A stretch of 63,581 bases of DNA, the filler included, from Hyphochytrium catenoides (taxonomy: Eukaryota > Protista > Hyphochytriomycota): the NCBI GenBank assembly GCA_900088475.1. It is 11 parts of 11 records of this genome, joined end to end, with 100 filler letters (N's around TTAATTAATTAA, not from the genome) between each part and the next. Parts side by side here need not be neighbours in the genome. Positions count along the whole stretch, not along the records: positions 24,204 to 47,457 come from FLMG01001993.1; 10 more parts are not named here. One strand, given 5' to 3'. Numbering within the stretch: the stretch's first letter is position 1; each line of letters begins with the position of its first letter. Under the pieces are notes generated by a model, which saw only the letters and a list, made by a program, of their open reading frames with translations, had not been told where the DNA came from and searched no databases. A program made the position numbers and the translations under genes. Of the stretch, positions 5,251-47,557 are shown piece by piece.

Positions 5251-5987
5251 CAAGCTGACAACACCAGGAGAGGCGAGGAAGGACGTCCTCCAAGAGCTCG
5301 TTCATGAAGAAGAACGTTTATAGAGATGAAAGCACTCTCAACCTGAAGAGCAGAGAAAATCTAGAAACGGAAGGGAAACAAGAAGCGCTCAGGAGAGGCC
5401 CAGCGAGGCAAAGAGCTGAGGCCAAACGGAGGACGGCGCAACGTTGAAAATCTTGGCTATCACAACGAGGTCGACAGGGAAGAAATGGAGAAAGTAAGAG
5501 AAGGGAGACCTTATGAAGAGGTTGTATTGGGGGAGGAAGAGATCTACAGGTCACCTGACAGAGCGTCACTTCTCATTACTATTTCTTCGTCTTCCCTCGC
5601 GCGTCCTCCCTCGCGTGGGCAGATATATTATACAAGGCCAACAGATGGAGAAGAGTGAAAGGTAGGGAAGAAAAGAGAGCGGGGAGCAAAGAAGAGAGTT
5701 GGGCAGCAGAGTGCAGAGGAGACACAGACAGAGAAAGAGATCGAGAGAGAGGGAGGTGAAAGATACGAAGACACAGAGAGATAACAGAGAGAGAAGACAG
5801 AGAATCGGCGAGAGAAGACAGAGAATCGGCAAGAGAGAGAGAGAGAGAGAGAGAAGAGAGATTGACGGGAAAAGAGAGAGAGAGACAGAGACAGAGAGAG
5901 AAAGAGACGGAGACGGTAATGGAAAACCGCACAGCACATCCTTTATTTATGAACATTTATAAAACACCAAGAACGGATCAGGTCTTT

Positions 5988-7580
5988 TCATACATTCTTC
6001 TTTATAAACATGCAGCAGACAGAGATGTCGTCTTTCTTCCCACAGTGGGCCTGTGAGACCTCTGAGAGCTGCTGGAGAGAGTAATACTCGCTGTTCTTAG
6101 ACAGCATCACCTCCTTATCCATGCATTTTCTCCTTGTACTCCTCAGGGACATCAGCTTTACCGCCTGCCGAAGATGAAAGTCAAGAGAGACGGAAGAATT
6201 CAGCGACGAGGAAGAGAGAGAGGAGCATCTCCTGTCCTGGGAGAGACGTGTGACCAGCTTGTGATAGGCCCGTGTGCCTGAGACGGCGAAGGGACGACGG
6301 TCTTTGCCGCTGTTAGCGCAGGCCTTAGAAAGCTCCGCGACAGCTTGAGCTACCTTCTCCGCGTTTTGACTAGAGATTAAGAGGCAGAGAAATGGAAGAG
6401 AGACGTCAGTTTCCTGGAAGTAGAACCAAGAAAGGAAGAGTCCTCAAGAGTGGGGAGACGAGAGAGAGAGCGAGACCAAGAGAGAGAAGGGGTAAAGAAG
6501 GGATAGACCACCGAGCGATCGAAAGAGCTTCATAGAGAGTAATGCAGGATAAAAAGAGATAAAAAAACAGGCGTGAGAGAGAGAGAGAAAGAGAGAGAGA
6601 GAAAGAAAGAACAGCGGGAGGATAGGCGTAATCTTCTCCTTTCGTGGCTTATCTTACCCTCTATGCTGTGCCACACAGTCCAGCAGCTCATCCTCAAAGA
6701 GATTATCAGACACACCGTCAGAGAACGTGAGAAGAATGTCCTCCTCTTGGAGAGAGAAACTCTCCCAGTTGATAAACGCAACGCAGTCCCTTAGCATTGT
6801 CCCAACGACTGCAGGCACATTCCAGCTCTGTGTGACACTGATTGTCTCAAACACGACTCTTCCGTCTCTTATCACCACTGTCTTGCTGTCTCCGAGCGTG
6901 AGCGTATGGAGAGAGAGAGAGGGAAGGTCCACGTACGCAACGCTCATTGTTGTCCCCACGACGGTTCCCTTACACTGGGCTTTTGCCTTGGCAATGGCGC
7001 GAAGAGCAAGAGCATGCATCGTGTTCTTGTCCACTAGGGAAGAAGAGAGGGAAGGAGAAGAAGAGGAGGAGAGAAAGGAAGAAGAAGAGCCCTTTCTCTC
7101 TCTGCTTCTCTTCTCTAGTGCCCTGGTAGAGCGGGAGTACAAGGCAAAGAGCTCAGAAGAGAGAAAGTTGGCGAGGGAACGCGCGAGCAGAGCAGAAGAC
7201 TCTTTGCTTCCTCCTACACCGTCCGCCACGATCTGAAAGTTAGGCCCACAGGCGGCTGCATCCTCTCCATGGCCAGGCGCTGGCTTCTCTACGCAAGCGC
7301 AAGAGAGAGAGACTTCCCGCCAAGAGAGAGAGTAGCCGCAGCCACTCTCTCTCTTCTCGTACCGCGAAGTACTATCTATGGCTTTAGCGGTCGTCTCTCT
7401 CGGGAGAAAGAGCTCTTTTCCTCTCTGTGACCCGCCGTAGCGCTTCAAACTGTTGGGTGCAGCGTTCTCTTTCTCTGAAGACCCGGAGCGGCTCCGATTG
7501 AAGAGTAAATCCCATAGAAAGTCCAGCGTAGATCCCTGCGGAGAGAGCTCCGATGCTTCGGGGCTGGCCACTTCAAACAT
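5988..7580 (-). CDS. PP2C-family protein phosphatase, PTC7-like (exons 7580-6658, 6369-5988; true start may lie further upstream)
   Basis: Motifs GEDA, VADGVGG, GTT, LGDS, FSDGVSDNL and terminal GKKDDISV. The phase-2 GT-AG intron joins in frame; stop is TGA at 5988-5990. Confidence 0.88.
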
Positions 7581-8054
7581 TATGATAAACGGGATGGATG
7601 GAGGGGGAGAGAGAAAGAGAGAGAGAGAGAGACGAAGAGAGAGGGGACGTTTCTTGTCCCGCGTCAAGTGGGAGGATAGACTCTGTCGGCAGAGATTGCC
7701 ATCGCCATGAGGATCATCTCGCCCTCTCTAATGTCATCCAAACTGTCGCGCGGAAAGAAAGGCGCAGACAGCGCCGGAGAAAAGAGAGAGAGAGAGAGAC
7801 GGAAGAAACAGACAGTGCAACGCTTGCAAACAAATAAGAAGAAGAAAAGTGCTTGAAAGGAGGCGCCGATGGGGAGGCTTTCTCTCTCTCAGTTGCTGCC
7901 TTTGCCGATGAAGCTTTTGCGCCACTTCCAGAGCTGAGGACGGCCCAGTCCTGAACTGCCGCTGATGTAAGAGAACTAGTAACTCATTCAAGACCATGAA
8001 GGCAAGAACGTAGGCAGTATGCAGCATGGAGCGAGACAACATGGGATAGATGAC

Positions 8055-8085
<31 letters not shown>

Positions 8086-8550
8086 NNNNNNNNNNNNNNN
8101 NNNNNNNNNNNNNNNNNNNNNNNNNNNNNNNNAGAGAAAGAACGCTGTGGACGAGTCATGATGCGGACGCAGTCCTACCTCCTGAGGTGTCTGGCAATAC
8201 AGGTCCAAAGAGATACAAATGACAATCAGACAGATTGAAACCGAGACATCACACAACTATCACTACAGGGCATATGGCTACAGACAGAGTCTAAAGATAG
8301 ACGAAGGTGACAAAGAAAGAGTCCAGAAAGGACACGGAGCCATGGAGAGAGAGAGAACTCTGAAAACGGCTCTTGCTCTGTTTGCAGAACATCAAAGCGG
8401 TTAATTACTAGGTAGGAAAGCTGCCTGGAGTGTATTTATAGCTGAGAAAGCGGTTTAATATCAGGTAGTTGAACTTCAGAAAGTACATGCTGGCCCCATT
8501 GCCCAGCTGCAGCTGACAATGGCACCTGCTCTCTCTCTCTCTCTCTCCCT

Positions 8551-8650
8551 NNNNNNNNNNNNNNNNNNNNNNNNNNNNNNNNNNNNNNNNNNNNTTAATT
8601 AATTAANNNNNNNNNNNNNNNNNNNNNNNNNNNNNNNNNNNNNNNNNNNN
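8551..8650. other. Artificial scaffold-joining spacer (44N-TTAATTAATTAA-44N). Identical spacers at 12996-13095, 18066-18165, 24104-24203, 47458-47557, 52625-52724, 55103-55202, 57191-57290, 59811-59910, 61762-61861
   Basis: The same 12-mer, which gives stops in all six frames, is flanked by fixed-length N runs 10 times. Genes are cut at these points. Confidence 0.97.
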
Positions 8651-9610
8651 ATCTTCTTGCTTCTTCCTGTCTTCCAAGACTGCTATCTCAGTATATTGAT
8701 GACTGCTGGCAGCACCACCAGCTGCTAATCGATCAAGCAGGTGGATGATAAAAGTTCGTAGGCAGCGGCTACCCTGAAGAAGTTATTGGTTGGCGGCCAA
8801 GTCTGGGCCAGTTCCCCTGCTGCCTATAGAGAAAAAAAGGCTCAGGCATCCCCGGCCTGGCTCTCCGACAACTGCCTATTAAAGGTAGAACAAGGCTGGA
8901 GGACTCAGCGCGAGGACCGTGCTCGCCAGGCTGCCTTCCTAAGGAAAGCCCAGAGGATCTGTCCGTGATGCCCTGCTGCCCTTTATAATAGAGTGGGGAA
9001 GAGGACATGGACCTTGCTTCAAGTTGGACGGCTGGGCATTGGGCCACTTCCCAGTGTTAATATCTCACCGCCATCTGCCATCATATGAAAACATCAGCGT
9101 TTGACCCAAACAAACCCTAAGAGATGGACATATCGCCATGCTTTTTCATGTCTTGTCGCTCCAGTTCAAGGCTGCTTTCCTGATAACCGCACTTGGCAGA
9201 AGTCTTCTAATAGGTCATCAGGGCAGAGAGAGAGAGAAAGAAAGAGAGACGAAACAAGAGCACGACGATGGAGTAGAATGAGATCGGACGAAGAGACAGA
9301 TATGTATATATTTACTATATGCCCATGCTCTGTACGAGAGAGAAGAACAATACCGCCAGGCTTAACTCAATGCATTTGTTCCTCACCAGTGAGAAGAGAT
9401 TCATTAGCATCAACAGCTCTTCCTATTATCCTATTATATACCTCTCTGGACACCAGGCACGAAGAGGGAAAGATTTGTACAGAGGAAGGAGCCGAAAGGA
9501 GAGATCACAATGGCAGAGCTGCCAGGAGATCCCAAGATAGAGCAGCCTGCCAAGGACGGAGTAGCCACGAACAGGACGGACAACCTTTAGCTGTCCGCCA
9601 ACACCTTTCT

Positions 9611-11596
9611 CTACATCGCGGGGCTACTCTTTGCAGAGGCAAACGAGGGAGAGCGAGAAGATGACGAGAGAAACGCAGGAGAGGAGGGAGAAGAAGAGAA
9701 GAGAAGTACTACCGGCCTCTCGGAAGTCGCGATGAGAGAGACGACCTCCGCCAGCTCCAGGCCTTGAACCTCAATGTTATTCACGGACAACAAGGTATCG
9801 TTCAGCCGAGCGAGGTCTTTCCCTCTGTGGACGCCGGGGAAGAGATCCGGGAGGATCTTTGAGATGTAGACTCTCGAAGTGACGAAGTCTTGTTTGAGAG
9901 AGATCGCAAGCTTGTACCTGTCGCACCAGAGGACGTGGTAGACGCTAGGTCTCTTTTCTTCTTCTTCCTGCTGCCCTGCCTGTTCCCCTAATACGTCTCT
10001 CCTCTCTCCCCTATGTTCGCAGAGCTGCTCGTTCACAAGCAGCATCTGCTGCGCCGCAATCTGTGCCTGTCTCTCTTCTTCATAGGGAAGAGGAGGTGCG
10101 GAGAGGGTAAGAGTTCTTCGTCCCGCTTCTCCTCCTCCATGACTCTTTCTTCCTATGTCTGGATGGCTGTCAAACGCAGCGAGAGACGAGGCGGAAGGGA
10201 AAGAAGTGGAAGATGGACGTGGAGAAGAACTGTCACCAGCCACTAGTGGAGTGACAACCGGTAGAAGCTCTCTTCTGGGATCATAAGAGAGAGATGGCAG
10301 AGCAGCACCAGAAGAGAGAGAGGAGTGCGAAGGAGGGCTTCGGACTGGGGAGTCTCGACCGGGAACGACCGTGAAGACAGAGGGATGAGGAGGATGCGCT
10401 TCTCTCTCTTGTTCTTTGCTAGAGGCTTTCAGTTGGCGGAGTGGGGAGAGCACCGCAGTGTTCTTTCCTGGTGACTTGGTCCCTTCTCTGCCTCCCTGTT
10501 CCTCAATGGTACCCTCTTCTTGCCGCTGCAGCTTGTGAGGATAGTAAGGGGAGAAGGTGTAGGAGGAGGCGATCGAGGAGTTCTTGTCTCTCTCTTCAGG
10601 AGAAGGAGTCCTAAGAACTATTCTCTCAGCAGCATAGTCTTTCGTCATCTCCTGTGTCTCCCAGCCTGTCGGAGCTTCTTCCATTCCATCCTCTTCTCCT
10701 TTCTTGTTCTGCTCCTCGAGCACTACTACCTCTTGCATCTGAAGGCTCTTTCTCTCTTTTCTCTCGCTCGCAGTCACGTCGTCTTCTCTCTCTCTCTCTT
10801 GCTCTTGCTCATTTGTAGTAGGTGACTGTAGCTGCCCGACGCTCGAACAACCAATCTTCTTTTCTAGCTCCTCGCCTGAGGCTCGTCGCGGCCGTCTACA
10901 ATGAACTTTGTTCACAGGTAACGACGAAGTAAGGAGAGAAGAAGACCCGCCAGTAGAGGAAGAACGGGAAGCATTGGGAGGTGGAGGAAGCTCGATGCTT
11001 GTGACGGAAGAGGTAGAAACAGAGTTGATCCGTGCCACTCGGCCCGCAACGTTCCTCTCCACCATCGTAGGCCGGACAAAGGTCAGCGTGATCGGGAACG
11101 GCTGAGACGTAAGCAGCTCTATCACGGCCTCAATGCCGACATAGGACGTCCCAATGTCATTAGCAGCCACCAGGACGTCCCCTGGCGTGACCTTCCCATA
11201 GAAATCAGGGCAGGCGTCCGGTCCAAATGTGGACTTCAAAGAGCCGATGATCGGCCATCCGTCCTGCATCTTTAAGAAGAAGCCCGTGGTTCCTCGGGAC
11301 CACGTGACGGCGAAGGTCGTTCCCTCGGGAGGCTCGTGCAGCTCGGAAGAGTAGAAGGAAGAAGAGTATTGTGGAGAACAGGGAAGAAGAGAGACATGTG
11401 GCGGCAGAGGAGAGGGAGAAGGATGAGCCGGCGGAGAGAAAGAAGGTCCTCCGAGATGGACAGGGAGAGAACAGAAAGGTGGGGGAGGAGGAGGAGGAGG
11501 AGCCGCGTAGGCAAACTGCGGAGGCGTCAGCAAGGCCTCGCCGTGAGAATAAGAGAGGTGCCATCCTCCTCCTTCGCTTCCCCTATTGTTCCTTGC

Positions 11597-24093: not shown

Positions 24094-27000
24094 TCCACTG
24101 CTTNNNNNNNNNNNNNNNNNNNNNNNNNNNNNNNNNNNNNNNNNNNNTTAATTAATTAANNNNNNNNNNNNNNNNNNNNNNNNNNNNNNNNNNNNNNNNN
24201 NNNATATCATGGTTTTCGGGGCTCCTCGGCTGAATCCAGACGCGCCCTAAGAAGTTTTAGAACTAGAACCTTTTTCCTGCTAGTGAAAGCTGAGAAGCAG
24301 GGCGGTGCTTCTCCTAAATAATCGATAGGAGCAGGTGCTAAAGAGTTCTTTCTTTACACAGGAGGCCAGTCCCTAGACGGAGAATGTGCTTGATGATTGA
24401 CCAATCAGAACGTAAACTGCTCTCATGCGTGGCCAATAGGATGGATGGGATTCTGTTTAGAACCACATCAACTGCAACAACGCGTACGGATAGGAAAAGC
24501 CGCAGGCAAGTCGGCTACAAACAAGCCTGTTAGAAGTTGCCAGCACTTTCTTTTATAAGAGCCAAGACAGCTTGCTTTGGAGACAGAGTTTTCACTCCCC
24601 GTTTGATTATTAGCGTTATTGTTGTCTGCAGGCAGCAAGCTGCGTCCTTCGGTAGTAAATAACCAAGAGTAGGGATATCGTCCTGGCTCCAGGTTGATCT
24701 TCTTTACTTGAAAAAAGGCTTTTTCAGCGTCGAAGACCTTCGGTGGAGCTACTGATGATGACGGCCATGGGGGCCTGGAGGACAGATGCACAGACACAGT
24801 TATATCTTCTTTCTCTTTTGCCTTCCCTTCTTCAAATTGGCTCTCCGGTCAATTTCTAACCACTGCCTTGAGATTTCATCAAGGGCAATGGTGACATCAA
24901 GAATAACTTTGCTTACTTAGTAGCATGCTCGTTTGACTGCTCAGCGAGGACAGCCACCACGCGCGGTCCTTGGCGGAGGGATCATATCATCTTTGGAAAT
25001 TGCAAATATGATAGGCGTTCGTTGCGTCTTTCTTGCTTGTGTCCCACAGAAGAGCTAATAGCACTAGTACAAATGAGGATTCTTGACATGTTACTTAACC
25101 TAACTTTGCGAAAAAGGATAACGGCGATAGATTAGTGCGACGGTGGTGGGGTGATGGAGAGCAAGAGGAGGGTAGAGGACAGGAAGGGGAAGTTATGGTG
25201 AAGGAGTGTGCTTGGTGCGACGAGTACGAGAGTAGTTGAGGATGGGACGATATATGGTGATGAGGAGGAGAGATGTCATCTAATGGAGGGCTATGATGTT
25301 ATACCTGATATGATGATGGCACTGACCAATAAATGTACAGAATGGGTGAAAAGTCCTCATTGCAGCTCATGCCCCGACTCTTCTAGGAGGACGAGCAGCT
25401 AGCAGCCACGCAAGAAGAAGCAGCAGCACGATGATCTTTGACCCAGCGCAAAGTTGTTCTAGAGTCACTATATACTCATCACCACTTACAGTGGTGGGCC
25501 GGCGAGAAGGCAGCGTAAGAGAGAAATCTGGGCGAAGCTGCCACAAGTACCATCACCATTACTATTTGCTGCCTAGTTGTGACAGTGACAGGAGCGATAG
25601 ACCAAAAGACGATCCGAGCGGGACCTGGGATCGGGACACGAACGCTTCTTCCAAGTCAGCGGCCGGCAAAGAGGAGGACGAGAGTAGAAAACAAAGTTAC
25701 TCTAAAAAAAAAGCTACTCTAGAAGCAACAAAGTGAACGTAACATTCCCTTTGTTGCCTTTTATCGTTTCTCTTTATGGAGAAGCCAGCTGGAGTCACAC
25801 GTAAAATATAGTACTACTGCTTTACTAGAAATATCCCAAAATGCTTCTAAGCGGAACACAAGCAAGCAGACGAACCCCGCAGCTATCTTTCCTATTCCCA
25901 AGGGTACGTAAACTTTTAAAGTAGAAGAGGACCATCGTGACTCGCTGTTGTTGGTGGTGCTGAAGAATGCCAGTAGCAAGTGATGACTATAATAAGTAGC
26001 TACCGGTACTACGTAAAGGACCCTACTACTATTAATGTTGGAGGAGATGAGAAGAAAAGACGACTACAATTATCTTCACAGGCATACAACGTCCCCAGAC
26101 CTAATGCTAGGGAAGAATGAGTAAGAATGTATTCGGCCGAGAAGGCTACTTATCACTCATCAGACCCTCCGCCACATCATTCAACGATAGTCCAGCTGCT
26201 GTTTCCTACCTAGAAGAATATTTCTTCCGTCTCCAAGAGAAGGACGCCACCCAAAACCAACAACAAAAGTAGGTTGTCATCATTATGGCAAGCAATGACC
26301 CAAACTAAGGCTGCTAAAGACGAAGCAACCAACCGAGAGTAGTAGCCTACTAGAGAGAGAGAGGACAGACAAAGATCCAAGCTTTTCTGATTGTTGAGAT
26401 AAAAGGATGCAGAATGGAGACGGAAGTACGAGATCTTCTACACCCAGCTTATCACCTGCGATATAATCTCCCAGCTCTGTGAGGAGCAGGACAAACCACC
26501 GTTGATGACGTGAGAGAGATGCTACGCAGGACCAAAGCGGCCCCCACAAAAAAAGAGAAGCTTTCTTGTATGTGGTGGTGCACTGATGACGCCAATGGTT
26601 GGCCCGCTTGTTGCTTCCACTCCTTCCTTCTATGTCGAGCTCACACTATCTCGTACCTTACATCCTTTTGCCTCTCGAAGGGACGGGCTTCCTTCCTCCC
26701 CCTCCTCCTTCTTTCCCCTCTCTCTCTCTCTCTCTNNNNNNNNNNNNNNNNNNCTGTCTCTCTGTCTCTCTCTCTGTCTCTCTGTCTCTCTGTCTCTCTC
26801 TCTGTCTCTCTGTCTCTCTCGTCTCTCTCTGTTTTTCTCTTTCTCTCTTCTGGTTGTCGCCATCCCTGGACATGATGGCATATCTTTTGTGTGGGGACCG
26901 GACAGGGGGAAAAGAAGCGAAAGAGACACCCCCCATCCAAAGCGTATTTTGCAGTTTCAGGTGGGGATGCTGAAGTGTCACAGGTGCAACTCAAAGGCAG

Positions 27001-28229
27001 AATCTACAGTTTGAAAGTGGAAAAAGGAGTCTGGGTTGTTGCCCTTTTTGGCGTTACATCTTTGGACTCACAGCCCGTTGGATTTCAGGTGGGAAGCTTT
27101 CATCTCCCAGAAAGATTCATTCTTTGTTCTTTGATGGCTTAGATACATGAAGAATTCAAGTATCTTTCCAATATTCCTCTTATGAAGAACAAAGCGGGTG
27201 ATGGCTGGATAGTGACGACTTACACAGCGTGAGCGAGGGGAGGACACAGAGACAGAGAGGGGAGTAGAGAAACAGAGAGGGGAGTTGAGAGACAGAGTAA
27301 GGAACGAAAGACGAACTGAGTGTAGAAAGAATTGGAGAGAGGAGAAGGAATTGAGAGAGAGGGGCTAGGGAGACAAGAGATATGTAGAGAGGAGTAAGCA
27401 GATAGAGAGATGGAAGGAGGACCAAACGCCGGAGAGAAACAGAAAGAGAGAGAAGGAGAGAGAAGAGAGAGACACACAGAGAGAGAGACGACAGAGAAAA
27501 AGAGAGAGGGAGAGAGGGAGAGAGAGGGAAAACTAAAGAAAGAAAGAATGAGAACGAGACAGAGAACGAGACAGAGAAAGAAAGAAAGAAAGAGGGAGTG
27601 AGAGAAAGAAAGAGAGAGAGAGATGGGGAGAGAGAGGGGGAGAGAGACAGNNNNNNNNNNNNNNNNNNNNNNNNNNNNNNNNNNNNNNNNNNNNNNNNNN
27701 NNNNNNNNNNNNNNNNNNNNNNNNNNNNNNNNNNNNNNNGCTCTGGAGGGAAGAAAGTTGGGGCCTGCAACAGCGCGGACGGAGGGGGAACAGAGACAGG
27801 ATGTAGCACACGAGAGGAGAGAGAGAGAGAGAGAAAGAGAGAGAGATGGCCAAGAGCGCAGTAGCACCGGATAAGGAAGAGAGAAAGGAGTTCAAGGCAT
27901 GCAAGTCTCTCTCTTTCCCTCAAAAAATAAGGAAGCGGCCAGCCGTCATCGCTCCTGTTAAAGCTAGCTGCCGTTCAAAGAGACCGAGAGAAAGCCTTGT
28001 AGAGCTTCGCCAAAGACATTAAGATAGCAGCGTTGAACGCGGTCACTCTGTCAACGAGTGAAAGCGAGCCTAATCAATTCTAATAAGTGACGAATGCTCT
28101 GACGTTCTAGATGCGCGGGAAGAAGCAGAAAGAGAAAGTGCTCCAGGAAGAGAGAGGATAGTTCTAGAAGAGTTTAGATCTCTCTCTCTTTCTCTCTCTC
28201 TCTCTGTGTGGTCTCTGGCTATCGACGTG

Positions 28230-29725
28230 ATGGCAGACTCAAAAGCAGACTTTGAGACAGCCTTTGAGCTGGTAGTGGAGCGAAGGGAAGCCCCGCTACC
28301 GCCTCTAGAGCCTAAACAAGTAACTGTCCGAGAGACAGAGCCAAGCCAAACCTTTACCAGGCCCAGAGTGAACCTTGGAGGCTCACGATGGCGCCGTCTA
28401 CAGCCATTTGCTCGTCCTGTGGCTTGGGATCTGGAGGGCGGTGGACATAGAGAGACAATGAGTGGTAGTAGGGTGGTGGACAGGGAAAGCTCTTTCTCTG
28501 GTGGGTTCCTGGTGAAAGAAGAAGTGCGAGAGGCGATTATGAAAGAGTATCAGGTAGAGCATGCTTCCCTCTCTTGCTATCACTCTTCCCTTCTTCTTTA
28601 TTATTGCCGCCGCCATTTCTACATATATATGACCGTCTTTCTCCCGTGTTTCCCTGCGACTCCCTGGCAGCTCCCTTCTCCTCTCTTATTCCTGGGCCAG
28701 TCTTGTCCTGCTCTTCTCTCGTTCTCCCATTAAGCCCGTCTTTTTCTTCTCTAGCTCTCTCTTAATGGACGGCCGCTCTAAACGCCCCTAACCCTCTCGC
28801 GCTCCCATAGACGCTAAAAACGCATTGGTTGACCTTGAGGTTCTTGGATCCAAAGGAAGAAGCAAAGTACCAGCGGCAGAGCAACCAGAACCTCTTCCAG
28901 CCCTTAATAACTCACATCCTTCTGGCAGTGGTGACAGTCGTGCACATCGCCTTCGTAGAGCTCAGGCAGCTTCTTGGCGGCGATCACTGGCATGTCGCCT
29001 ATGCCGTCGCTTTTCCATTAGTTATCCCGATGATTATCTTCCTTCCAGACTTCCGGCAGTATTGGAAGCTCTCTTTTGCGCTTCTTACGGCTTGCCAGGT
29101 AAGATAGATCAATATAAAGGGCTTGCCGGGAGACAGAGCGAGAGAGGCACTAAGAAGGAAAGACAGTACTGGACCTCCAACCCTTGCTTGCACCTTCATC
29201 TTTTTCCCATCAAGTGATTGCAAGTGAGGGAGCTCTCTTACTTTGGCTTGAGAGTAGCCCTCCCTTTTCTCGTCCACCCTTTCCTCCTCCTGTCAGTGCC
29301 CACTCCGTCGTTCTCTTCACCCTCTCCCACGTTCATATCTCTTATACTCCCGTTATTCCTCCTACTTTTAGCGGTGCTCCTCGGTCCCGAGTACAGAAGT
29401 CAAACCTTTTTTAGCTGCGCTAGGGGGCTACATGTCTAGGCTAACACATTCGGCTTTGCTCTTGCTCTTTCTACAGATCGGCTTCTTAGGTGCTGGTATG
29501 AGAGAGTCACAAGCTGTCATTTTGACAGGCTTGCAGGGTATCTGCCAGTACTCCATCCAGACCTTCGATAACATCTGCAGGATAGCCAACCCGGACCCTG
29601 TGCTCAGGCAGTCAGCACTCATGCTTGGGATTTGTGTGCTGGCGATGTTTACTATCATTGATATCTCGATAGGGACAGCAGGTGATTCTTCAATAGTCAT
29701 CCTTCTTAGCTCTGTATATATCTTT

Positions 29726-29773
<48 letters not shown>

Positions 29774-31989
29774 TTCTCACTCTCTTTTTCTCCCGTATGC
29801 CTTCGCGGCACAGAATATAGTGTTTTGGATCCCTTTCCGTCATGTTAGACTGTTCCTCCCTCTTATCTCTTCATCTACTTCTATCAGCTCGTTATGGACT
29901 GCGCTTTTAGCTTCATCTTTGCCGTCAAAAGCTCCTATCTCCCAGTGATTGTTTATCTCCCCGTTCGTTATCCTCTCTGAAGGCTTGCGTGGCACTGTCG
30001 TCAGAAAGCTCCTGACCTATCCTTGCTTTCATACTTCTTCCTCTCTTGGACACTCTCTCTTTTTCTAGGAGGAGTGGACTTCATATATCTCGTCGCCGTC
30101 TTCCTCGTGTGTGGAGCCTTCAACTTAGTGCTGGTAGAGATGTATCAGGTGACGCCCGAGCCCTACACGTTCGCCATCATCTTCATCGGTCTAGTGATTA
30201 CACTGGGTCCCAGCCGGCTCTCAGAGACAAGATCCAGGCTGAACTATAACATTCAGCAAATTCTCTATAAGAGGCACAAAGAAGAGCAGAAAAAAAGAGA
30301 AGAGAGTCAGAAAGAGCAGGAGAAGCTTATCAAGCGGTTAAGAGGCTATGAGAACCCTAACGAAGAAGAGAAAGACGCCGTAGATAGGATCCTAGGGCAG
30401 AACCCCTCTCTGAATGCGTCACAAATTATGTTCAAGGACTTAGATTTTGAAAAGATCATCGGGGCGGGGAGCTTTGGAGAGGTCCTACTAGGCAACTATA
30501 CTGGGACCAAAGTGGCAGTAAAAAGGTTGCTGAGGCATAGAATCAACGAAGAATATCTTAGCAGTTTCGTGCAGGAGTTGATGCTTATCAACAAGCTAAG
30601 GCACCCCAACATTGTGCAGTAAGTGGAAGTAAGCGGCTGAAATGTAGAGAGAGAAAGGGCGGCGAAGAGAGAGAAGCGAAGAGAGATAGCCAAGAAAAGG
30701 GATGGACCTGACTGTTTGAGAAAATAGCTGCGTAGAAGCGGAAGCTAGCTTCCTCCGTGGAGACGACAGGAAGAAGTGAGGGACAGTAACAGTACCTCGA
30801 TTCCCTAGCATTCAAAGCTTCAAGGCCATGAGTCTTTCCCCGCGGTGGTGCTGATCCTCTTGCCTCTGTTTGTTTTCTCTCGCTTGTGCAGGTTTATTGG
30901 GGCTAGTTGGGACTCTATCTCTAACATCTGCATCGTCTTTGAGTACATGGAGAGAGGAAGCCTTAGAGAAGTTCTTTCAGTCTACGGCTCTGAAGCCGCT
31001 TTCTCCTGGGAAGACCCCTGTCTGCGGATGGCGATAGATATTACCAGGGGCTTAGCATATTTGCATTCACGGCACCCACCAGTCATTCATAGGTAAGCAG
31101 CCAATAATCAGTAGGTAGCTAAGTTTGAGCAACCTGGAGTCAGAGGAGCAGTGGCTAAGTGCAGTCAGCCTCTATGACGTCCCTAGCCAATAGCTACATT
31201 TGAACATTCTTATACTGACTGCAATGGTAGCCTGTGGCTTGCTCCCGAAGTTCACATAGCTCATATTCTTTGTCCCTGACGTCGCCTCCTTCCTCCCTTG
31301 CTTTAGAGATCTAAAGTCCGGCAATGTGCTCGTGAGCTCCACATTTGGGTGCAAAATAGCCGACTTTGGGCTGAGTAGGCACTGGACTGAAGAGGACACG
31401 ATGACTATCACGGGCAGTCCTCTGTGGTTTCCTCCTGGTAAGGCCCTTCCTTGATTTGCCACTGGTCAACTTTTCGCTCTGCTCTCTTAGTTCCCCCGCT
31501 TGCTTAGGGAATTCATTCTCACCTCTCCTCATTGCTGTGATGCCTCTCTACTATTTGAATCCCTCTTCGCTTTCTTCCGTCCTGCCTTGGTCCTGCCCTG
31601 GCTCTGTCTGAACGCGGCCCATACCTCGCCCTTTTTTCACAATAGAGATGATCCGGAGCGAGCGGTACACAGAGAAGGCAGATATGTACTCTTTCGGCGT
31701 CTTGCTCACTGAGCTGGACTCCAAGAAACTCCCCTATCACGACTTGATGAAGATCAATGGCACTAACCTCACCACCACGAAGTTGATGCACTTGGTGGCT
31801 TACTCGGGTCTGCGCCCGTCTCTGACTTCCTCGTGTCCGCTGGAGGTGAGGGAGCTCGTGGAAAGCTGCTTGGAGAGTGATCCCAGCGACAGGCCTTCCT
31901 CTCTAGAAGTGTTAAGCTCACTTCTTGAGATGATGCAGCAGAATGCCCTCAGGGTGGGAGAGTCTTTCACTTCCTCCTCTTCGGGGTAA
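28230..31989 (+). CDS. TKL (Raf-like) protein kinase with an N-terminal six-TM module and coiled coil (exons 28230-28553, 28811-29098, 29477-29681, 30069-30618, 30892-31092, 31307-31437, 31646-31989)
   Basis: All junctions are GT-AG and frame-consistent. Kinase motifs: IGAGSFGEV, VAVK, LRHPNIVQFIG, IHRDLKSGNVL, DFG, GSPLWFPPE, KADMYSFGVLLTELD. Six hydrophobic segments lie upstream. Confidence 0.93.
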
Positions 31990-37230: not shown

Positions 37231-38376
37231 TGTGGAGTCGAGCTTTGACTGCCTGCTTTTGGGCATTGACATCAATCATTATGTCACGACAGTCTGCCTT
37301 CGACCTCTAATAATATTTGAAAAGAAGGGCGCACTCTTCTCTCAGATCGTGTACGTTGATTCGGTCGTTAGATGACGACAATAATATTCAGGGGAAGGTT
37401 AGCAAGGCTACCGATGAAGATGATAATGTCTTACAATATAAATAGCTAGGGAAGACTAATAAGATAAGCCATACAAAACAATAGAAATACAATCATAACC
37501 TACAATAATATATTAATAACGAAGAGTGGAAGAAAAGGTTCTCTCTCCTGTGCCTGTGCCTCCCTCGTCCTACATTCAAAACTCCCTTCCTTCCTTCTTA
37601 CGTTGTTCTCATAATAGTACTCTTGACTAAAATCTTCGTTATACGCTGTAGCAGGCAATGGGTACTATAGGATGAAAGGATAATGATCACTCAGTGATGA
37701 TTCCTCTATAGAAGAAGGCTTATTATATTCCGATGCAGAGATCGATGATGATGAAGATTGAGCAGACTGAAGGGAGGTTTCTGAAGCTTTCCGTTAACAG
37801 CTTTCTTCTGTTTCACCCTTACTCTGTCTCGACGACCACACTCCGCAGTTTAGGACCGCTGCACATATCTTCGCTCCTCTGTCTTACAGAACCAACCGCT
37901 GGCCTGCTTTTGTGCCTCTGGCTTTCTGGCTTCTGGGGTTGAAGTTCTGATGGAGTACTCAACCGTATCAGTGAGAGGGGCCCACTTCTCTCTCACCCCT
38001 CTGGCTCGGTCCTTTATTCTATAGAACCGCCTCTGTCTCAATTTGCTGTCTACCATTTCTCCTCTTTTGGTTTCTTTCTTCCCGCTCTGTCTTAGCCATC
38101 TTGTCTATTTTGGTTTTCTCTGTCTCTCGCTCTAAGAAGCCTCTTCACGATTTCTCTTTGTCTCTTTCTGTCTCTCTTTCTTGCTCTCTCTCTCTCTCTC
38201 TCTGCCTCTTTGAGATCTATCTTCACCCACAGAGATCCTAGCTAGCGCCACACCGCGAGCTCCGCCGAAAGGGAAGGTCTGGCGTCTGTCGCAAGCTCTC
38301 AACTGTTCGCAGAGCCTCTTTTGCCATCACCTGGTAGCCGGAGCCCTATCTCTTCAGTTCTAAGCCCTTCTCAAAG

Positions 38377-41300
38377 ATGCTCTCAAGCGTATCCCGAAGG
38401 CTTGTTAACGCTCTTACTGGGCCTGCCATCAGGAGACCGCTGCTAAGGGCCTCCAACCCTGCTTTCGTCTCTTCTATCAAGCCATTTAACCAGGTAAAGC
38501 CTCCTAACCCCTTCCTTCCTAAGCGCCAGAAGAAGGCATAGTACATAGCGCCTCTACGTCAATCTGCCTGAGACTTCCGCTCTCTTGTGCTTCTCTCTCT
38601 TTCTCCTTGTCTCGGTCCCTCTCACTTTGGCTATTTGTTGCTCAATACTCATGTTTCCCGGGCGCTAGGCTTCGCAAAGGTGGCTAAGCGTGGCTCATCG
38701 CGACGAGAAGACGGCTGTTCTTATTGAGACGGAAGACGAGTCAGGTGGGACCATTTATGTTGACCTTCTCCTATTTTTCTCTCCTTCGTTTGTCTCCTGT
38801 GGTCTCTTCTTTCTGTGTGTGCTTGAATGGAAGCACTAGTCGGTCACCATAAGTCACTGGCCTTCAAGTTCCTTGCAGTTCCCTTGGCAGATCATGGTTG
38901 CTTACCTCGGCCTTTGCTGCTCGCCTTCCGTGTGGTCTCCCATCTCCCCCTGTTTTGGTCAGGAGCTTTGCAAGAAGCGCTTAAGTTCTTCTGGAAGCAC
39001 AATGTCAACATGACGCACATCGAGTCTCGTCCAGGAAGAGGAGATACCTACGCTTTCTATATAGATTTTGAGGGCAATACTCGCGATGAGAGAGTCAAGG
39101 CACTTCTAAAGGACCTTAAGGCTAACTGCCAGAACCTTATGATCATGGGAGAGAGACAGGGTAAGCATAGGACAGATGAAGGAGAGTGAAGCGCCAGAGT
39201 GCTTGAGGGTGATAACGAGGAGGGAGAGATGTGACTCCTATAGACTGGAAGAAAGAATGACAAGGTCTTTCTGATCCTGAATCGAACTTACGGTTCTGCC
39301 GTACGGCCCCGAGGCTGTCTCCATCTCGTCCAACTACACTTATTCACTCAGAGTTTCTGCTTCTGGAAGGTGCTAATCTGCTCTTTCATTTGTAAACAGT
39401 GCCATGGTTTCCGAGGAGAAAGGCGGACTTGGACACAGTTGCTGGACAGGTAATTATTGGATACGTTGCCCTGCTTTCCTTGCCGCTTTGGCTTTATTTG
39501 CTATCCACTTTTCCCGCTACCCACATATGACGCTGATCTCTTCGTTTTCTTTACAATTGGTGTCCTCTGCTCGACTCGATGTGTCTCGGTAGACCATGGA
39601 CGCAGGTGGAGAGCTATCTTCAGACCATCCAGGATTCAAGGTAAGACCAGCGTATATGCGGCCGCAAACGAAGTGAGATCTTGTTACCTCATGCATGTAC
39701 CGCCTAACATTCTCCTTATTCAACTAGGACCAAGAGTATCGCAAGCGTAGAGAAGAGCTGGCTGCCATTTCCAATACCTTTGAGATGGGGAAGCCGATCC
39801 CTCGGGTTACCTATACTGAAAGAGAGGTAATAACCCACAGCGAAAGAGAGATCATTAGTTATGGACAGAAAGCCCCAAGAAGAGTTGAATCCCTCGCGGG
39901 TCAGGGTTGTCCTTCTCCCTGCGCTATAACCTCAATCTGCGCTGACGATCTCGTCTTTGACTTCACCGGCTACCGTGCCCAGATTGCGACATGGCGTACA
40001 GTGTGGGAGAAGCTTATGCCCCTCATGGATCAGTACGCATGCAAGGAGTACAAGTACATTCTCCCGCTTATGAAGAGCGAGTGCGGGTATGCGCCGGATA
40101 ACATCCCCCAGGTCAAGACAATCATCAGCCTTGCACATTTCTCTTGCTAACTCTCTTGTCTTCTGTAGGCCGAAGATATCTCCAGATTCTTAAATGAATG
40201 CACAGGTAAGAGAGAGATACAGGTAGAGATAGCCGATGCCCGTCGTAAGAAGCTGGCGGTAGAGGAGTAACAGAAGAATTCACGGGAGTACAGTGAGAAT
40301 CACCAGGCTTCGGATCTGCTTCTCTTCCGCCCGACACACGGCTAGAGGCTTTTTGCGGGTGCCCTTGGTCTATTCTGCCCTTTCGTTCTTGTGAGGCATA
40401 CTGCTTCCCATTTTTTCTGTCTTCTTGCGCAATTCTTCTCTCTTTTCCTTATATGTTGGCTCAATGGCGACTCTCCTCTCCTTACAGGCTTCACTCTTCG
40501 CCCTGTGGGTGGGCTGCTATCGTCCCGTGACTTTCTAAATGGTCTGGCATTCCGCGTGTTCTTCTCCACGCAATACATCCGCCACCACTCGGTGCCGCTC
40601 TACACGCCAGAGCCCGATATCTGCCATGAACTTCTTGGACATGCTCCAATGTTTGCGGTGAGACAAGATGGCGCAGTTGTCTTGTCTCCATTTCCATTAG
40701 TTGTTATCCATGTGGCCGAGTCTGCTAGTGAACAATTATTACGCTTGCCGTCTAATTTTGTTATCTTGCCGCCTGGCTTGGTCGCGCCTTGCTGACCTTT
40801 GGAGTACAGGACCCGGACTTCGCGGACTTCTCGCATGAAATCGGGCTTGCATCCTTGGGGGCTTCAGATGAGGATATCCAGAAGCTGGCTACGGTGAGCA
40901 TATGAGGCCGTTAGAGAGAAGGTTTATCCAGTGGGAAAATGAAGCCAGGAGCGCGGCTTGAATATTGCCAAAGACAAATAGGCGTTTACCTTATAATCCG
41001 TCAGATAGGCTGAAGGAACAGAAGGCGTGACATAGCACCACTTTCCACGAGAAGGGAGAGACCAGAAAGAGAGAGAAGGGTAGAATACGGGGACACCTTG
41101 ACTGGACGCTTTCTGATCCCGCTCCAATATTCTCAGTGCTACTGGTTCTCGGTGGAGTTCGGACTCTGCCGTCAGGATGGTGCCCTGAAGGTGAGACTTA
41201 CGTTATAATTTTGACCTTATAGGCAAGGCTTGGGCCCCTCGAAATATTTGGAACTCACTTTGTACATACATCTCACCTTACGTCCCTTGCAGGCCTACGG

Positions 41301-42858: not shown

Positions 42859-45800
42859 TTAACCCTCAGACGTGTCGCCGGCCATAGGGTGGGTCTCTTC
42901 ATTCCCTTCGTTGAGCTCATGAACGAAGCCTTCCCCAATAATCTCGCTGCAGTTGAGACTATCTCTATAGTCCTCTATGAAGGAGAAGCGCTTGAATGTG
43001 TCCTCAGTTATCTGAGGGTTTGAGCGAGACGAGGGAGTGGCAAGCAAAAAGAAGGAGCGCTCCGATGGAGATGTAAACGCCTCTTTGGGATCCAAAGAGA
43101 GAAGTCGCGGGTCAAAGTACTGAGAATCCTCCCAATTCTGCGAGACAACGAAAGGCAGAAAGTCAGGAGAGATAGAAATCTGAGCTGGGATGTGTTGTTC
43201 CTTTCTTTTCTCTTCTTAGTTAAGTTTCCTCGATCTCTTTCCCGCCTCGCCCCTGCTATTTGCAACGTTTTCTCGCTAGTTCACCGCCATGTCCCGCTTC
43301 GCGATCGCAATTCATAAGAGGTTGCTGCAGTCTCCCCTTACCTGATCGGGCAGCCAGGGGGGTGGTAACTGCTTTCTTGATAGCTTCTCCCAGTTTATCA
43401 GAGAAAAGTAAGGCTGAGAAGTAATGGCAGAGAGGGAAGATCCCAAGCGCCGCTCTGGGTCCTTCACAAGGAACTTCTGCTCCCAGATAGCAGGACGCGA
43501 GGAAGATCATAGAGGAGAAGTCAAAGAGAAAGGAAATTGAGCGGGAAGGTACAGAGGAGCCAAAGGAAAGCAATATGAGTAAGGACGTGATAGTGCGTAA
43601 CGTTAACCTGCCATGATGATGACGAAGAGATGCTGGAAGATAACGTGCGGCACCTAAAAGTCCATGCACAGATGGGCCGATGACATAACGCTCATGCGAA
43701 GATCACTCATTAAAAGGGGAAAGTAGGCTGTGGCCCGAGCATGGTAGGAAGTAAATAGTACAAGGTGGAGAAACCAGAACTTCTACTCGCTTCCCAGGTC
43801 ATCTAAAGTATCCCTCTCTCCTCCCCTGCTCTTCCTCCAAACCATCTTCTCCGCGGACGATACCTTGATAATATCTCTTGTTAGGGAGTCAAGCTTGGGG
43901 TGAGCGGGGAAGGCTACGTCTTCTCTTTCTATCATCCGGTACATCACTTCCAAGTTCTTGTGGTGGAAGGGTCGTCGACCGAGGGACATTTCATAGATCA
44001 TGACACCTGAGGCATCGTGCAAGTCACCGAAAAGCGTGAGTGACAGGAATAATAGATTGAGCAGGATATAGAGGATAAGAGTCTAGAGACCTTGGGCATA
44101 GAAGATGCAATAATCTCCACTAGGGCGATTAGGTCATTGCCTGCCCTAGGCTGCCCGTCTACATCTAGAGGCGCGATAAGCCTTCAACCCTCATGTGTCC
44201 TAAACCTATATGCCGTTGCTTCAGGGAACACCTACCTAAACACCACCAGTCCACTGCGCTGCCATAACTTCTCTCTTTCTTTGGTTTCAATAGCTCGGGA
44301 GCCGTGTAAGCCGGTGAGCCTGCCAAAGTTCGTCCGCCCTCCTTGGCTGTACAATGGAGTTTAGCAAGACCAAAGTCCACCAGAGCGATATGACCCTCGG
44401 CATCAATCATGACGTTATCCGGTTTGAGATCCCTAAGAATGGAAGTCAGAACAACCAAGGGCTCGTCACTATGCCTAATGAAGACTTCGTATGCCTTATG
44501 ACAAGAGGTAAATGCGAAGAATAGTCGAAATGGAGAGGAAAAAGCTAGGCGTGATAACAGAGACCTCAAACAGAAGGTTAACAATCTCCAATTATTGCCC
44601 TGCATAGGTAGAATAAAGCCCGATGCTCATGCCGAGGAATTTGGCGCTACCTATAGCAGACTCCAAGCTGATGCAGGTGGTCGAGCGCCAATACTATCTC
44701 TGATGCATAGAACCGTACTCTCTCGCCATCCAGCGGCCTAGGTCCTTTCTCGGGGTGTAGGTGGCTGTAAAGGCTGCCACCGATGTAGAAATCCATTCCT
44801 AAGTACAGCTTGTTCGTTGTCTGGAAGGAGAAACTGCAGCCAAATAGCAGTCAGAGAAGCGAACTAGACTTATGGACGGGTAATCTGATGGATGTGCGAA
44901 GTGAAACAACTATCTTCACGTATCGGACTCCAACAATGAGGCGGTGCAAAGAAGAGAAAGGGTGAAGTGAAGCCGAGAGCGCGACCCTACCGCAGACTGG
45001 CTATAAAGGGGTGATTGACATCCCTAAGAATCTGCATCTCGGTCAGTGTGCCGCTTATATCATGCTTCGTCATCGAGGGTTTATCTAATATCTTGATGGC
45101 AAACATCTCTTTACTCTCAAGCTTGCGAGCCATTACGACCTAAGGTGTAGGAGGAACGGAAATTTACAACATGAACTAAGTAGCCAGTGGGCTAACTGGA
45201 GCCAGACCAGATGGCGAAGGTAAAGGCCAACCACTAACAACGTCCGAGATCCAGCAATGCCACATCAGGACGCAGGGCAAAGAGATGTTCGTATAACCCA
45301 GGGTGCAAAACGAAATCTTAGCTTTTCACTGCCGGAAACCCTTTATGTCTTAGAGGGAAAAAAGGAAAAGCATGTCACTACCCGGGACAGCATCAAATAG
45401 GCTACTGACTTAGTGCCGCAGAGCTAAGAGAAACAGAGAAAGAAGCTACTCGCACCGTTCCAAAGCCTCCTCTTCCCAGTACCCTGAAGATCTCGAAGTC
45501 ATGGATGGATAGGGCTTGGACTCTCTTCGTTCTGCAGGCGTAAGGGTCTACCTCATCATAGTCTTTATAGTACAAAGTCCTCAGATACTTCTCTTCGGTC
45601 AACATATTGAGACTCTCCACCCGTCCACCAGGGGTCAGAGACAGTTGGAATTCCATTCCCGACCGGAGACATACGGAGCGGCGAGGAAGACAGAGGCGGA
45701 GAGAAAGATGTGCGACACAGGCGTTTCCTGCTGCCTGTAAATGTCTGCAGTCCATACCGATGACCTCTATGTTCCGAAAGAAAGCGTTAAGGAGGAAGAA

Positions 45801-47262
45801 GAACCCCTCTTTCCCATGGTACTCTCCTCCAGTGAGATATCCCCAGTGGACGTTGGTCACAATAACGATATCACTACATACAACTGCACAATCAAAGAAA
45901 TGAAGCCTTTTAGCAGGCGAAGAAAGAGGATGAAGAATAAAGGAGGAAAGGCAGCCCTAACGGACTCAGAAAGTGCTTGAGACTGTGGGACAGGAAGATT
46001 GGACGGAGCTGGAGCTAGGGGAACAACCGGCCGCTCAACGCAATCCCGGAGCTAGGTTTGATTCTCAGACAAAAAAATAGAACGGGCGAGAAATCCCTTG
46101 TGCACGCGGGAAGAGTACGCGAGTAATGGGGGGAGAACAGAGACCAATGAAAGCAGAGAAGGGCAAACACACTAATGATATTGAACGACAAGTAGGCAAG
46201 CAAGATACACTCGTAGCATGACACGGAGGGTAAAGCGGAAAATATTGTGAGACAATCTCCAGAGAAAGACCCAAACGCGAGAGGTGGCCGTGCCGACCTT
46301 GAAACATATTGAGAACTTCTTCAATGGCCTGGGTGGTGCCCCAAGACGAGAGACAGAGCCTCTCAAACCTCTTGATAAATTCCTCTGCAGCCGCTCTAGT
46401 CCTAGCCGTTATGTCTTCTAGTTTACGAGTTGGCATAAGACTCCTGGAAGGAGCGCGAGGATGCACCGGCGCCATCTTATGCTTCTAAAACACCGATTGG
46501 ACTTAGACGTCAGGTATATAGACAGAACGAGAAGGCTGGAGAGATGTAAAGCCGCGTAGAGCGTGAGGCCAACCATGAGCAGCAGAGAAAGGTGAATGCG
46601 ACTATGGCAGTGAATGGGACACTGCTAGCTAGATGGAAGTGAAGACGTTCATACAAGAAGGTCGATCAAAAAGTCGAGGGCACACACTCTTCAGGACCAG
46701 TGCAGTCTTCAAGGATCACCTTTCGTATATCCTCGAAAGCGAGCCCTCTCCTGATCATTCTGACCCACATCATCTTGTCCATGTCGTACGCGGCTTTGAC
46801 ATGAAATTTGTCCCCATCCTGAGTTTCGATATCAAAGCACTCGTCTGTTTCCTCCCTCTCTAAGACTCTTCTTATAATAAACCCGCCTCGTGCTTGTCTT
46901 CGCTTTGCCTTCTCCTTAGAAAGATAGTCTGTGGCAACGTCATAAGACACCTAAAGAAAGTGGCGCCGAAGAAGAGGAAGGATTCTTGCCGCAGACAAAG
47001 ACAGGCAAGCTCAAACAATGGGGAGAAGAAAGATGGAGCTAGTAGCGAAAGCCTGGTGCAATGAGAGCTGGAGGCCAGAACCGAGGAAGTTGGGCAGAAG
47101 GGAGTACCTACAGGTCATCATGTTGCCCTTCAACAGGCAGTATCGTGGCCGCCAGGACTTGAAGAAGTTTCCCCTCTTCCATAGAGAGCCTTCCCACTCA
47201 ACGATGCGGGTATAACCCCCGTGGGAGCCTCGAAATAGACCATGAGTCTCAAGGCTGCGGGT
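42859..47262 (-). CDS. AGC-family (Akt/SGK-like) kinase with PH domain and SnoaL/NTF2-like domain; 5'-partial, multi-exon
   Basis: PH: [30 protein letters not shown]...DKMMWVRMI. Kinase: [61 protein letters not shown]-tail has the hydrophobic motif FKRFSF; stop is TAA. Confidence 0.93.
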
Positions 47263-47557
47263 CTACAGTGAGGGCAGAGAAGAGGACGGATGAGGGAATA
47301 GAAAGCCTAGGCAAGTGTGGGCCGCAAGGGGCGGCCTAGAATGGTGAAGAAGAAGAATACCAACAGAACCGGACTGAAGAGGAGGCAGAAGCAGCTCATA
47401 TGAAGACCCGATATCAGGGTATCAGCATTGCAACAGAAGAACAGCCAACGCGTGACANNNNNNNNNNNNNNNNNNNNNNNNNNNNNNNNNNNNNNNNNNN
47501 NTTAATTAATTAANNNNNNNNNNNNNNNNNNNNNNNNNNNNNNNNNNNNNNNNNNNN

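Follow-up and report, generated by a model that had tools for sequence, protein, structure and literature searches.

A predicted NTF2-like domain between the PH and kinase domains of an Akt-like kinase gene in Hyphochytrium catenoides

In the well-studied Akt kinases, the linker that joins the PH domain to the kinase domain is short and unstructured. An NTF2-like fold is found in the association domain of CaMKII, a C-terminal hub that assembles kinases of the CAMK group into 12-14-mers, and many NTF2-like and SnoaL-type proteins are dimeric. In ECF41-type sigma factors, a SnoaL_2 extension sets autoinhibition. Here we describe a locus in a stretch of 63,581 nucleotides (nt) of DNA from Hyphochytrium catenoides, which is called the window below and along which all positions are counted unless a different scaffold or protein is named. 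The locus lies within the part of the window that comes from FLMG01001993.1 (24,204-47,457), with exon coordinates given from high to low on the minus strand. From its sequence, we consider it very probable that the locus is a single minus-strand gene of at least ten exons, that it encodes an Akt-like AGC protein kinase, and that a domain with an NTF2-like fold is located between the PH and kinase domains of the product. This judgement applies to the gene, its architecture and the identity of the middle domain taken together.

The middle domain comprises about 125 residues and extends from about 46400 to 45603 on the minus strand. The earlier note on this DNA had proposed a SnoaL/NTF2-like pocket at 45590-46420, a span that fits these limits, and the spliced peptide it quoted is reproduced exactly on the minus strand across exons 3 and 4. 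Exon 3 (46484-46298) encodes the linker that follows the PH domain and, at about 46400-46299, the first two helices of the NTF2-like domain, alpha1 and alpha2. A phase 1 intron of 414 nt with GT-AG ends (46297-45884) splits the domain between alpha2 and beta1, wherein exon 3 ends with one extra base and exon 4 completes a Val codon and reads VCSDIVIV...GRVESLNM. Exon 4 as a whole (45883-45456) carries the remainder of the middle domain, a linker and the glycine loop of the kinase. Its first part (45883-45603) encodes beta1, a YHGKEG loop, alpha3 and four long strands and ends with ...GGRVESLNM, and its second part (45602-45456) encodes a linker with a conserved DVDP...R-[ST]-K-R...L-S motif, followed by GRGGFGT from the start of the kinase. 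Exon 4 is thus unbroken from the middle domain through the linker into the glycine loop, and it joins the middle region physically to the kinase within a single exon.

There are several sequence comparisons that place exon 4 in a larger family. Aligned with hhalign to a family profile (A5) that was built without the window sequences, exon 4 matches over 93 columns (profile positions 44-138) with a probability of 95.9% and an E-value of 6.4e-9. An exhaustive HMMER search of 1.84 billion representative proteins returned one match to exon 4, the protein P0001, with an E-value of 2e-4 and 32% identity. Residues 12-62 of exon 4 are weakly matched by the Pfam family SnoaL_2 (PF12680) at profile positions 25-74 of 102, with a score of 15.8 bits and E-values of 0.022 and 0.012 in two Pfam scans, and at the sequence level the gathering threshold of 27 bits is not reached. 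The family is best described as a separate, unannotated one in the NTF2-like clan. The helices encoded by exon 3 align at helices 1-2 of the family (alignment A4), and exons 3 and 4 of the window, which form separate rows in the family alignments, fall in the correct order. A word-index protein search, which sees only proteins of similar length, gave no match for exon 4, and NCBIfam holds nothing for the middle domain. Likewise, only insignificant matches were obtained when exon 4 or the family profile was searched against PDB sequences, feature searches of the ESM Atlas gave nothing usable, and no relative was found in two scans of metagenome DNA. An exact look-up of seven ORFs from the window gave no match either, and the proteins of this genome are absent from the collections covered.

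The fold was modelled with AlphaFold2 for residues 31-166 of P0001, the closest relative, from alignment A4. The model has a mean predicted local distance difference test score (pLDDT) of 94.2, with all five models at 93 or above, and a predicted template modelling score (pTM) of 0.87. Helices at 2-22 and 27-34 are followed by a strand at 37-46, a short strand at 54-57, a helix at 58-72 and then four long strands, which is the cone topology H-H-E-(E)-H-E-E-E-E (H, helix; E, strand) of the NTF2-like fold. Foldseek finds at least 500 matches in the PDB at E <= 0.001. Among the 50 matches listed, limonene-1,2-epoxide hydrolase (LEH), NTF2-like structural-genomics proteins and putative isomerases lead, with a probability of 1.0, template modelling (TM) scores of 0.63-0.77 and identities of 7-20%. 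Against 48,161 representative chains, VIA-align gives a best Z of 16.5 for the ketosteroid-isomerase-like structure 3d9r, followed by many SnoaL, polyketide-cyclase and LEH proteins at Z 14-16, and some 180 matches (50 of them listed) have Z >= 8. A structural search of the ESM Atlas ranks an oomycete AGC/AKT kinase cluster first (TM 0.84 by query) and bacterial SnoaL_2 clusters next (TM 0.77-0.84).

The predicted structure thus provides a firm assignment of the family to the NTF2-like fold of the SnoaL_2/ketosteroid isomerase (KSI) type, and alignment to P0001 makes it likely that the window's own domain folds likewise. The resemblance to SnoaL_2, KSI-like and LEH proteins covers the whole domain, with Z 14-16.5, a root-mean-square deviation of about 2-2.7 A over 110-127 residues and TM values up to 0.84, and it is accompanied by the weak SnoaL_2 profile match of window exon 4. 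However, those proteins are mostly stand-alone bacterial enzymes or binders and share only 7-20% identity with the domain. The relatives of the window gene have no Pfam match there, and no candidate catalytic residues were seen to be conserved in the family.

A different identity for the middle region, that of a PAS/LOV-like sensor, is raised by the top PDB sequence match of exon 4, which is the LOV protein Adagio 2 (7wa4_B, residues 32-83), and by the segment GMDCRHLQ (45733-45756, minus strand), which resembles the flavin-cysteine motif of LOV domains. However, the E-value of this match (0.23) is not significant, and GMDCRHLQ is conserved in none of the relatives, whether P0001 or oomycete, and is taken as a chance resemblance. 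Moreover, the Foldseek and VIA-align matches listed are NTF2-like or labelled as cystatin-like fold, and none is PAS. Because the motif is unconserved and the family model is NTF2-like, a PAS/LOV identity was rejected for the family, and for the middle region it would be exceedingly improbable.

P0001 is a metagenomic protein of 557 amino acids whose gene is located on scaffold L001, wherein one uninterrupted open reading frame (ORF) extends from the last PH helix through the middle domain and the kinase to the tail. A PH exon lies just upstream of this ORF (L001 positions 5672-5780, MRGDDEIEWEGYIFKQG...) and is separated from it by an intron of 56 nt, which coincides in codon and phase (...FT|YY...) with the intron between exons 1 and 2 in the window. 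Correspondingly, the donor of window exon 1 (T|GT) is placed and phased as in L001.

When the whole of P0001 was used as a query, the search led to oomycete sequences that are labelled either 'AGC/AKT protein kinase' or 'hypothetical protein', with lengths of 780-920 amino acids and about 44% identity to P0001, of which they span 94-99%. The genera represented include Aphanomyces, Saprolegnia, Pythium, Globisporangium, Lagenidium, Phytophthora, Peronospora, Plasmopara, Bremia and Albugo. The middle domain is kept in all relatives of the full-length alignment A3 and of the domain alignment A4, and a hidden Markov model of the family finds it in paralogue groups outside its training set (P0089, P0048, P0103 and P0026). 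Pfam marks representatives of four groups with PH at about 60-225 and Pkinase from about 380-470 and leaves the approximately 200 residues between them unmarked, and the isolated domain of 28 relatives has no Pfam match at E <= 1. Judging from these sequence matches, the middle domain is a member of a conserved family that is found in several oomycete paralogue groups, in one metagenomic protist and in this genome.

The oomycete proteins named 'AGC/AKT protein kinase', examples of which are those of Aphanomyces invadans, Saprolegnia diclina and Pythium oligandrum (P0003-P0024, the P0088/P0099 group, P0089 and P0048), share with the window gene the order of PH, middle domain, kinase and tail as well as the G-R-E-G and G-G-R motifs, and the kinase exons in the window are 46-70% identical to them. 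They differ from it in that the window gene has at least nine introns, and in that its middle domain is only about 20-40% identical to theirs and belongs to no obvious oomycete paralogue group. Such an intron-rich structure is unlike that of oomycete genes. The earlier note had mentioned similar unannotated sequences in oomycetes, and these do exist, as is evident from the sequence searches and from the middle region that is blank in Pfam. Its proposal of an NTF2-like/SnoaL fold is borne out by the homologue model (pLDDT 94.2), by the NTF2-like matches from Foldseek, VIA-align and the Atlas and by the weak SnoaL_2 match of exon 4. Of the checks it put forward, structure prediction with Foldseek gave an NTF2-like result when run on residues 31-166 of P0001. 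PH, middle domain, kinase and tail stand together in the oomycete proteins retrieved with whole P0001.

The L001 scaffold is eukaryotic, gene-dense and intron-poor, with a guanine-cytosine content of about 42%, and carries the P0001 gene at 5672-7674. A second protein kinase gene (705 amino acids) is located directly downstream at 7863-9980, and CEP104-like, PALP and ribosomal L24e genes are found in the vicinity.

The domains on either side of the NTF2-like domain in the window have features of the Akt type. Exon 1 (47262-47112) encodes the N-terminal half of the PH domain (Pfam PH, E 0.0015), and exon 2 (46928-46720) encodes the C-terminal half including the C-terminal helix (Pfam PH at profile positions 58-103, E 0.002). 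Among PDB sequences, exon 1 is matched best by the PH domains of Akt1, Akt2 and Akt3, wherein the aligned stretch corresponds to Akt1 residues 8-31 and retains KRG...WRPRY. The lysine of KRG and both arginines of WRPRY are the residues with which Akt contacts 3-phosphoinositides. Thus, the sequence has an N-terminal PH domain with basic, putative phosphoinositide-binding residues in beta1-beta2.

The kinase is assembled from the exons that follow. Exon 5 (45139-44991; Pfam Pkinase, E 7.7e-6) covers subdomains I-III with the AIK lysine and the alphaC glutamate and is 56-59% identical to relatives by tblastn, and exon 6 (44833-44651; Pkinase, E 3e-6) covers subdomains IV-VIa. The (R)DLKPDN catalytic loop, DFG, the activation-loop Thr (GGRTLAGSP) and APE are all found in exon 7 (44432-44236; Pkinase, E 4.5e-16), which has approximately 70% identity to oomycete relatives by tblastn. 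Exon 8 (44006-43864) encodes subdomains IX-X and exon 9 (43476-43342) the end of the kinase (KDPERRLG) and the start of the AGC tail, and both have tblastn matches to relatives. Lastly, exon 10 (43137-42859) encodes the AGC C-terminal tail with the hydrophobic motif FKRFSF, for which the family consensus is F-x-x-F-S-Y, and ends with the stop codon TAA at 42861-42859. On the basis of these motifs, from AIK to FKRFSF, the encoded protein is an intact, Akt-like AGC kinase. The Pfam matches, the Akt matches in the PDB and the exon model also agree with the earlier note, which placed the middle domain between the PH and kinase domains of an Akt-like kinase.

The window gene therefore resembles Akt/PKB in its N-terminal PH domain with KRG...WRPRY, its AGC core, its activation-loop Thr and its C-terminal F-x-x-F-S-F. 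It differs from Akt, with its short linker, in that about 200 residues including the NTF2-like domain separate the PH and kinase domains, and a span of this length with a folded domain is found both in the window and in the relatives.

The ten-exon minus-strand model was derived by reading positions 47457-42600 and locating splice motifs. All nine introns (157-414 nt) have GT-AG ends, and the phases are consistent, with a total of 2061 nt that corresponds to 686 codons plus a stop and contains no internal stop codon. The exon boundaries are reproduced when relatives are aligned to the window with tblastn. Exon 1 has no in-frame ATG and is preceded by a pyrimidine-rich tract ending in AG. A possible first coding exon at 47361..47399 (minus strand), with ATG plus 13 codons and a GT donor, is a candidate only, without homology support, and the gene may in fact start outside the piece, past its edge at 47457. 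The undefined start codon leaves some room for an alternative wherein the PH, middle and kinase exons belong to separate genes, or the ORFs of the middle region are chance or pseudogenic. We regard this as very improbable in view of the nine introns with consistent phases and GT-AG ends and no internal stop, the fact that exon 4 passes without a break from middle-domain sequence to the glycine loop of the kinase, and the finding that L001 and many annotated oomycete proteins have PH, middle domain and kinase in this order in a single ORF. The uninterrupted frame of the relative also lends indirect support to co-transcription of the window exons.

The conserved positions of the NTF2-like domain, which are mostly structural, provide some indication of what it may do. 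In the numbering of the P0001 segment 31-166, G58-R59-E60-G61 is invariant among the relatives and reads GKEG in the window. Nearly invariant are an acidic residue where beta1 starts (D/E40), a basic one in the G-G-R of the last hairpin (R/K124) and some positions of the hydrophobic core. The polar R82 and N102 are conserved in oomycetes and not retained in P0001 or in the window. Since no conserved catalytic set is seen, the domain is probably not an enzyme. The four long strands have one hydrophobic face, and their other face is polar and variable (K/R/Q/S/E/T). This pattern fits a solvent-exposed outer sheet rather than the conserved hydrophobic face that would be expected of a sheet-mediated dimer or hub.

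The latter point is relevant for the possibility that the domain is a self-association module, which would form dimers or higher-order assemblies and bring kinases together for trans-autophosphorylation in a manner analogous to the CaMKII hub. As in CaMKII, an NTF2-like fold is covalently joined to a Ser/Thr kinase, and the P0001 model aligns both to the CaMKII hub (5ig0, Z 13.4) and to NTF2 itself (1ar0, Z 13.4). However, the hub ranks only 41st in the VIA-align matches and is more distant than about 40 bacterial SnoaL/KSI-type chains. There is also no match to the Pfam CaMKII_AD profile (PF08332), and the domain is on the other side of the kinase, being N-terminal to an AGC kinase instead of C-terminal. 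With an outer face of the four long strands that lacks a conserved hydrophobic patch, we consider a role in self-association to be rather unlikely.

Another possibility is that the NTF2-like domain acts only within the molecule, as a regulatory or structural element that docks on the PH domain or on a kinase lobe to set autoinhibition, like the SnoaL_2 extension of ECF41-type sigma factors, without any external ligand. It would be compatible with the fact that the universal positions are loop motifs (G-R/K-E-G before alpha3 and G-G-R in the last hairpin) and not candidate pocket residues. A second motif is conserved together with the domain. It consists of DVDP followed by R-[ST]-K-R-x-x-[AS]-L-S-x-x-x-F and is located between the NTF2-like domain and the kinase (45500-45560 on the minus strand of the window, 175-192 in P0001), and all of 31 full-length relatives retain its R, L, S and F. 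This linker motif may be a basophilic phosphorylation or docking site. Intramolecular docking is not favoured by the full-length AlphaFold model, in which no confident packing is seen, and the 31 sequences are weak evidence either way. We consider this possibility doubtful, though somewhat less so than self-association.

The mechanism that we tentatively prefer, while giving it less than an even chance, is that the cone of the NTF2-like domain binds either a small hydrophobic compound or else a peptide or partner. The kinase would be recruited and switched on as in Akt, wherein the PH domain would bind a phosphoinositide and the activation loop and the hydrophobic motif would be phosphorylated. 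The cone would be an added regulatory module held on flexible linkers between the PH domain and the kinase. Flexibility on the kinase side fits the full-length P0001 model, in which the linkers at 19-29 and 165-185 are of low confidence, with pLDDT < 50 for 165-185. Perhaps the binding of a ligand or partner alters the way in which the PH domain folds back onto the kinase in an autoinhibitory arrangement, and the cone would then supply a second input beside the phosphoinositide signal. As a regulatory module on a signalling protein, the cone has a parallel in the ECF41/ECF56 sigma factors, which carry a SnoaL_2-type domain without enzymatic function as a C-terminal extension. However, these are bacterial transcription factors with no homology to the kinases beyond the fold. 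In a more specific version of the preferred mechanism, which we regard as speculative and no likelier than the hub-like assembly, the cone would be a sensor for lipid-, sterol- or metabolite-like small molecules in series with the PH domain, and the kinases would be two-input coincidence detectors.

Several observations weigh against parts of this interpretation. The piece may not include the true start of the gene, and the exon joins are predicted from genomic DNA. The helical piece encoded by exon 3 (34 residues) gave no significant profile match when searched alone, and the fold of the window domain is transferred from P0001 by alignment. The model of full-length P0001 (pLDDT 69, pTM 0.63), which has a low-confidence tail, shows no confident inter-domain geometry. 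Furthermore, none of the polar residues that are candidates for lining a pocket is shared by every subfamily, which argues against one specific ligand common to all of them.

There are other features of interest elsewhere in this part of the window. A biopterin-dependent aromatic amino acid hydroxylase is encoded by a gene of several exons at 38827-40795 on the plus strand, which is probably longer. Its ORF pieces match ACT (E 8e-5) and Biopterin_H (E 4.5e-15 and 9.5e-35), and the stretch with the iron site is included. Another multi-exon protein kinase gene, Ser/Thr-Tyr-like, is located at 30023-31989 on the plus strand, with Pkinase matches at both ends (E 8e-10 and 1e-11). The first ORF of this gene has hydrophobic segments resembling membrane spans ahead of the kinase start. 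At 26757-27647, 29721-29792 and 38153-38203 there are long, imperfect microsatellites of the (TC)n/(GA)n type as well as runs of N that represent assembly gaps, and spurious LSLSLS and ERERER ORFs result from them. A coccidian origin, suggested by the hydroxylase gene and these repeats, was set aside because exon 4 has no close relative among the 1.84 billion proteins, where annotated coccidian proteomes would be expected.

The oomycete members of the family are public sequences that are annotated as PH plus kinase only, and neither Pfam nor the source names record the middle domain. A call at the level of the NTF2 superfamily may exist in InterPro, Gene3D or AlphaFold DB, and the structural match in the Atlas indicates that public predicted models already contain the fold. 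Searches of the full-text literature found no description of a layout consisting of PH, an NTF2-like/SnoaL domain and a kinase. The kinome of Phytophthora infestans includes 20 kinases of the AKT subfamily, six of which have PH or PX domains, and its description makes no mention of NTF2 or SnoaL (PMC3019232). PsYPK1, an AGC kinase of P. sojae with an 'N-terminal region of unknown function', was considered and set aside as a different protein that has no PH domain and whose kinase domain occupies residues 542-861 of 870 (PMC7010300).

AGC/Akt kinases are among the best-studied signalling enzymes, and the connection between their PH and kinase domains is usually viewed as a short flexible tether. 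The family described here appears to place a well-folded NTF2-like domain in exactly this position. It has multiple paralogues and is conserved across the oomycetes, which include major pathogens of crops and animals, and it is also represented in at least two other eukaryotic lineages. Approximately 140 residues of these kinases are currently without annotation. Even a modest reading yields a precise annotation, with domain boundaries, the G-R/K-E-G and G-G-R loops and the basic linker motif. If the cone binds a ligand or partner, the kinases would have a second regulatory input, an oomycete-enriched feature without a counterpart in classical Akt. If the cone is a small-molecule sensor, the oomycete paralogue groups would read different ligands, and if the kinases are coincidence detectors, they would embody a signalling principle that is undescribed for AGC kinases.

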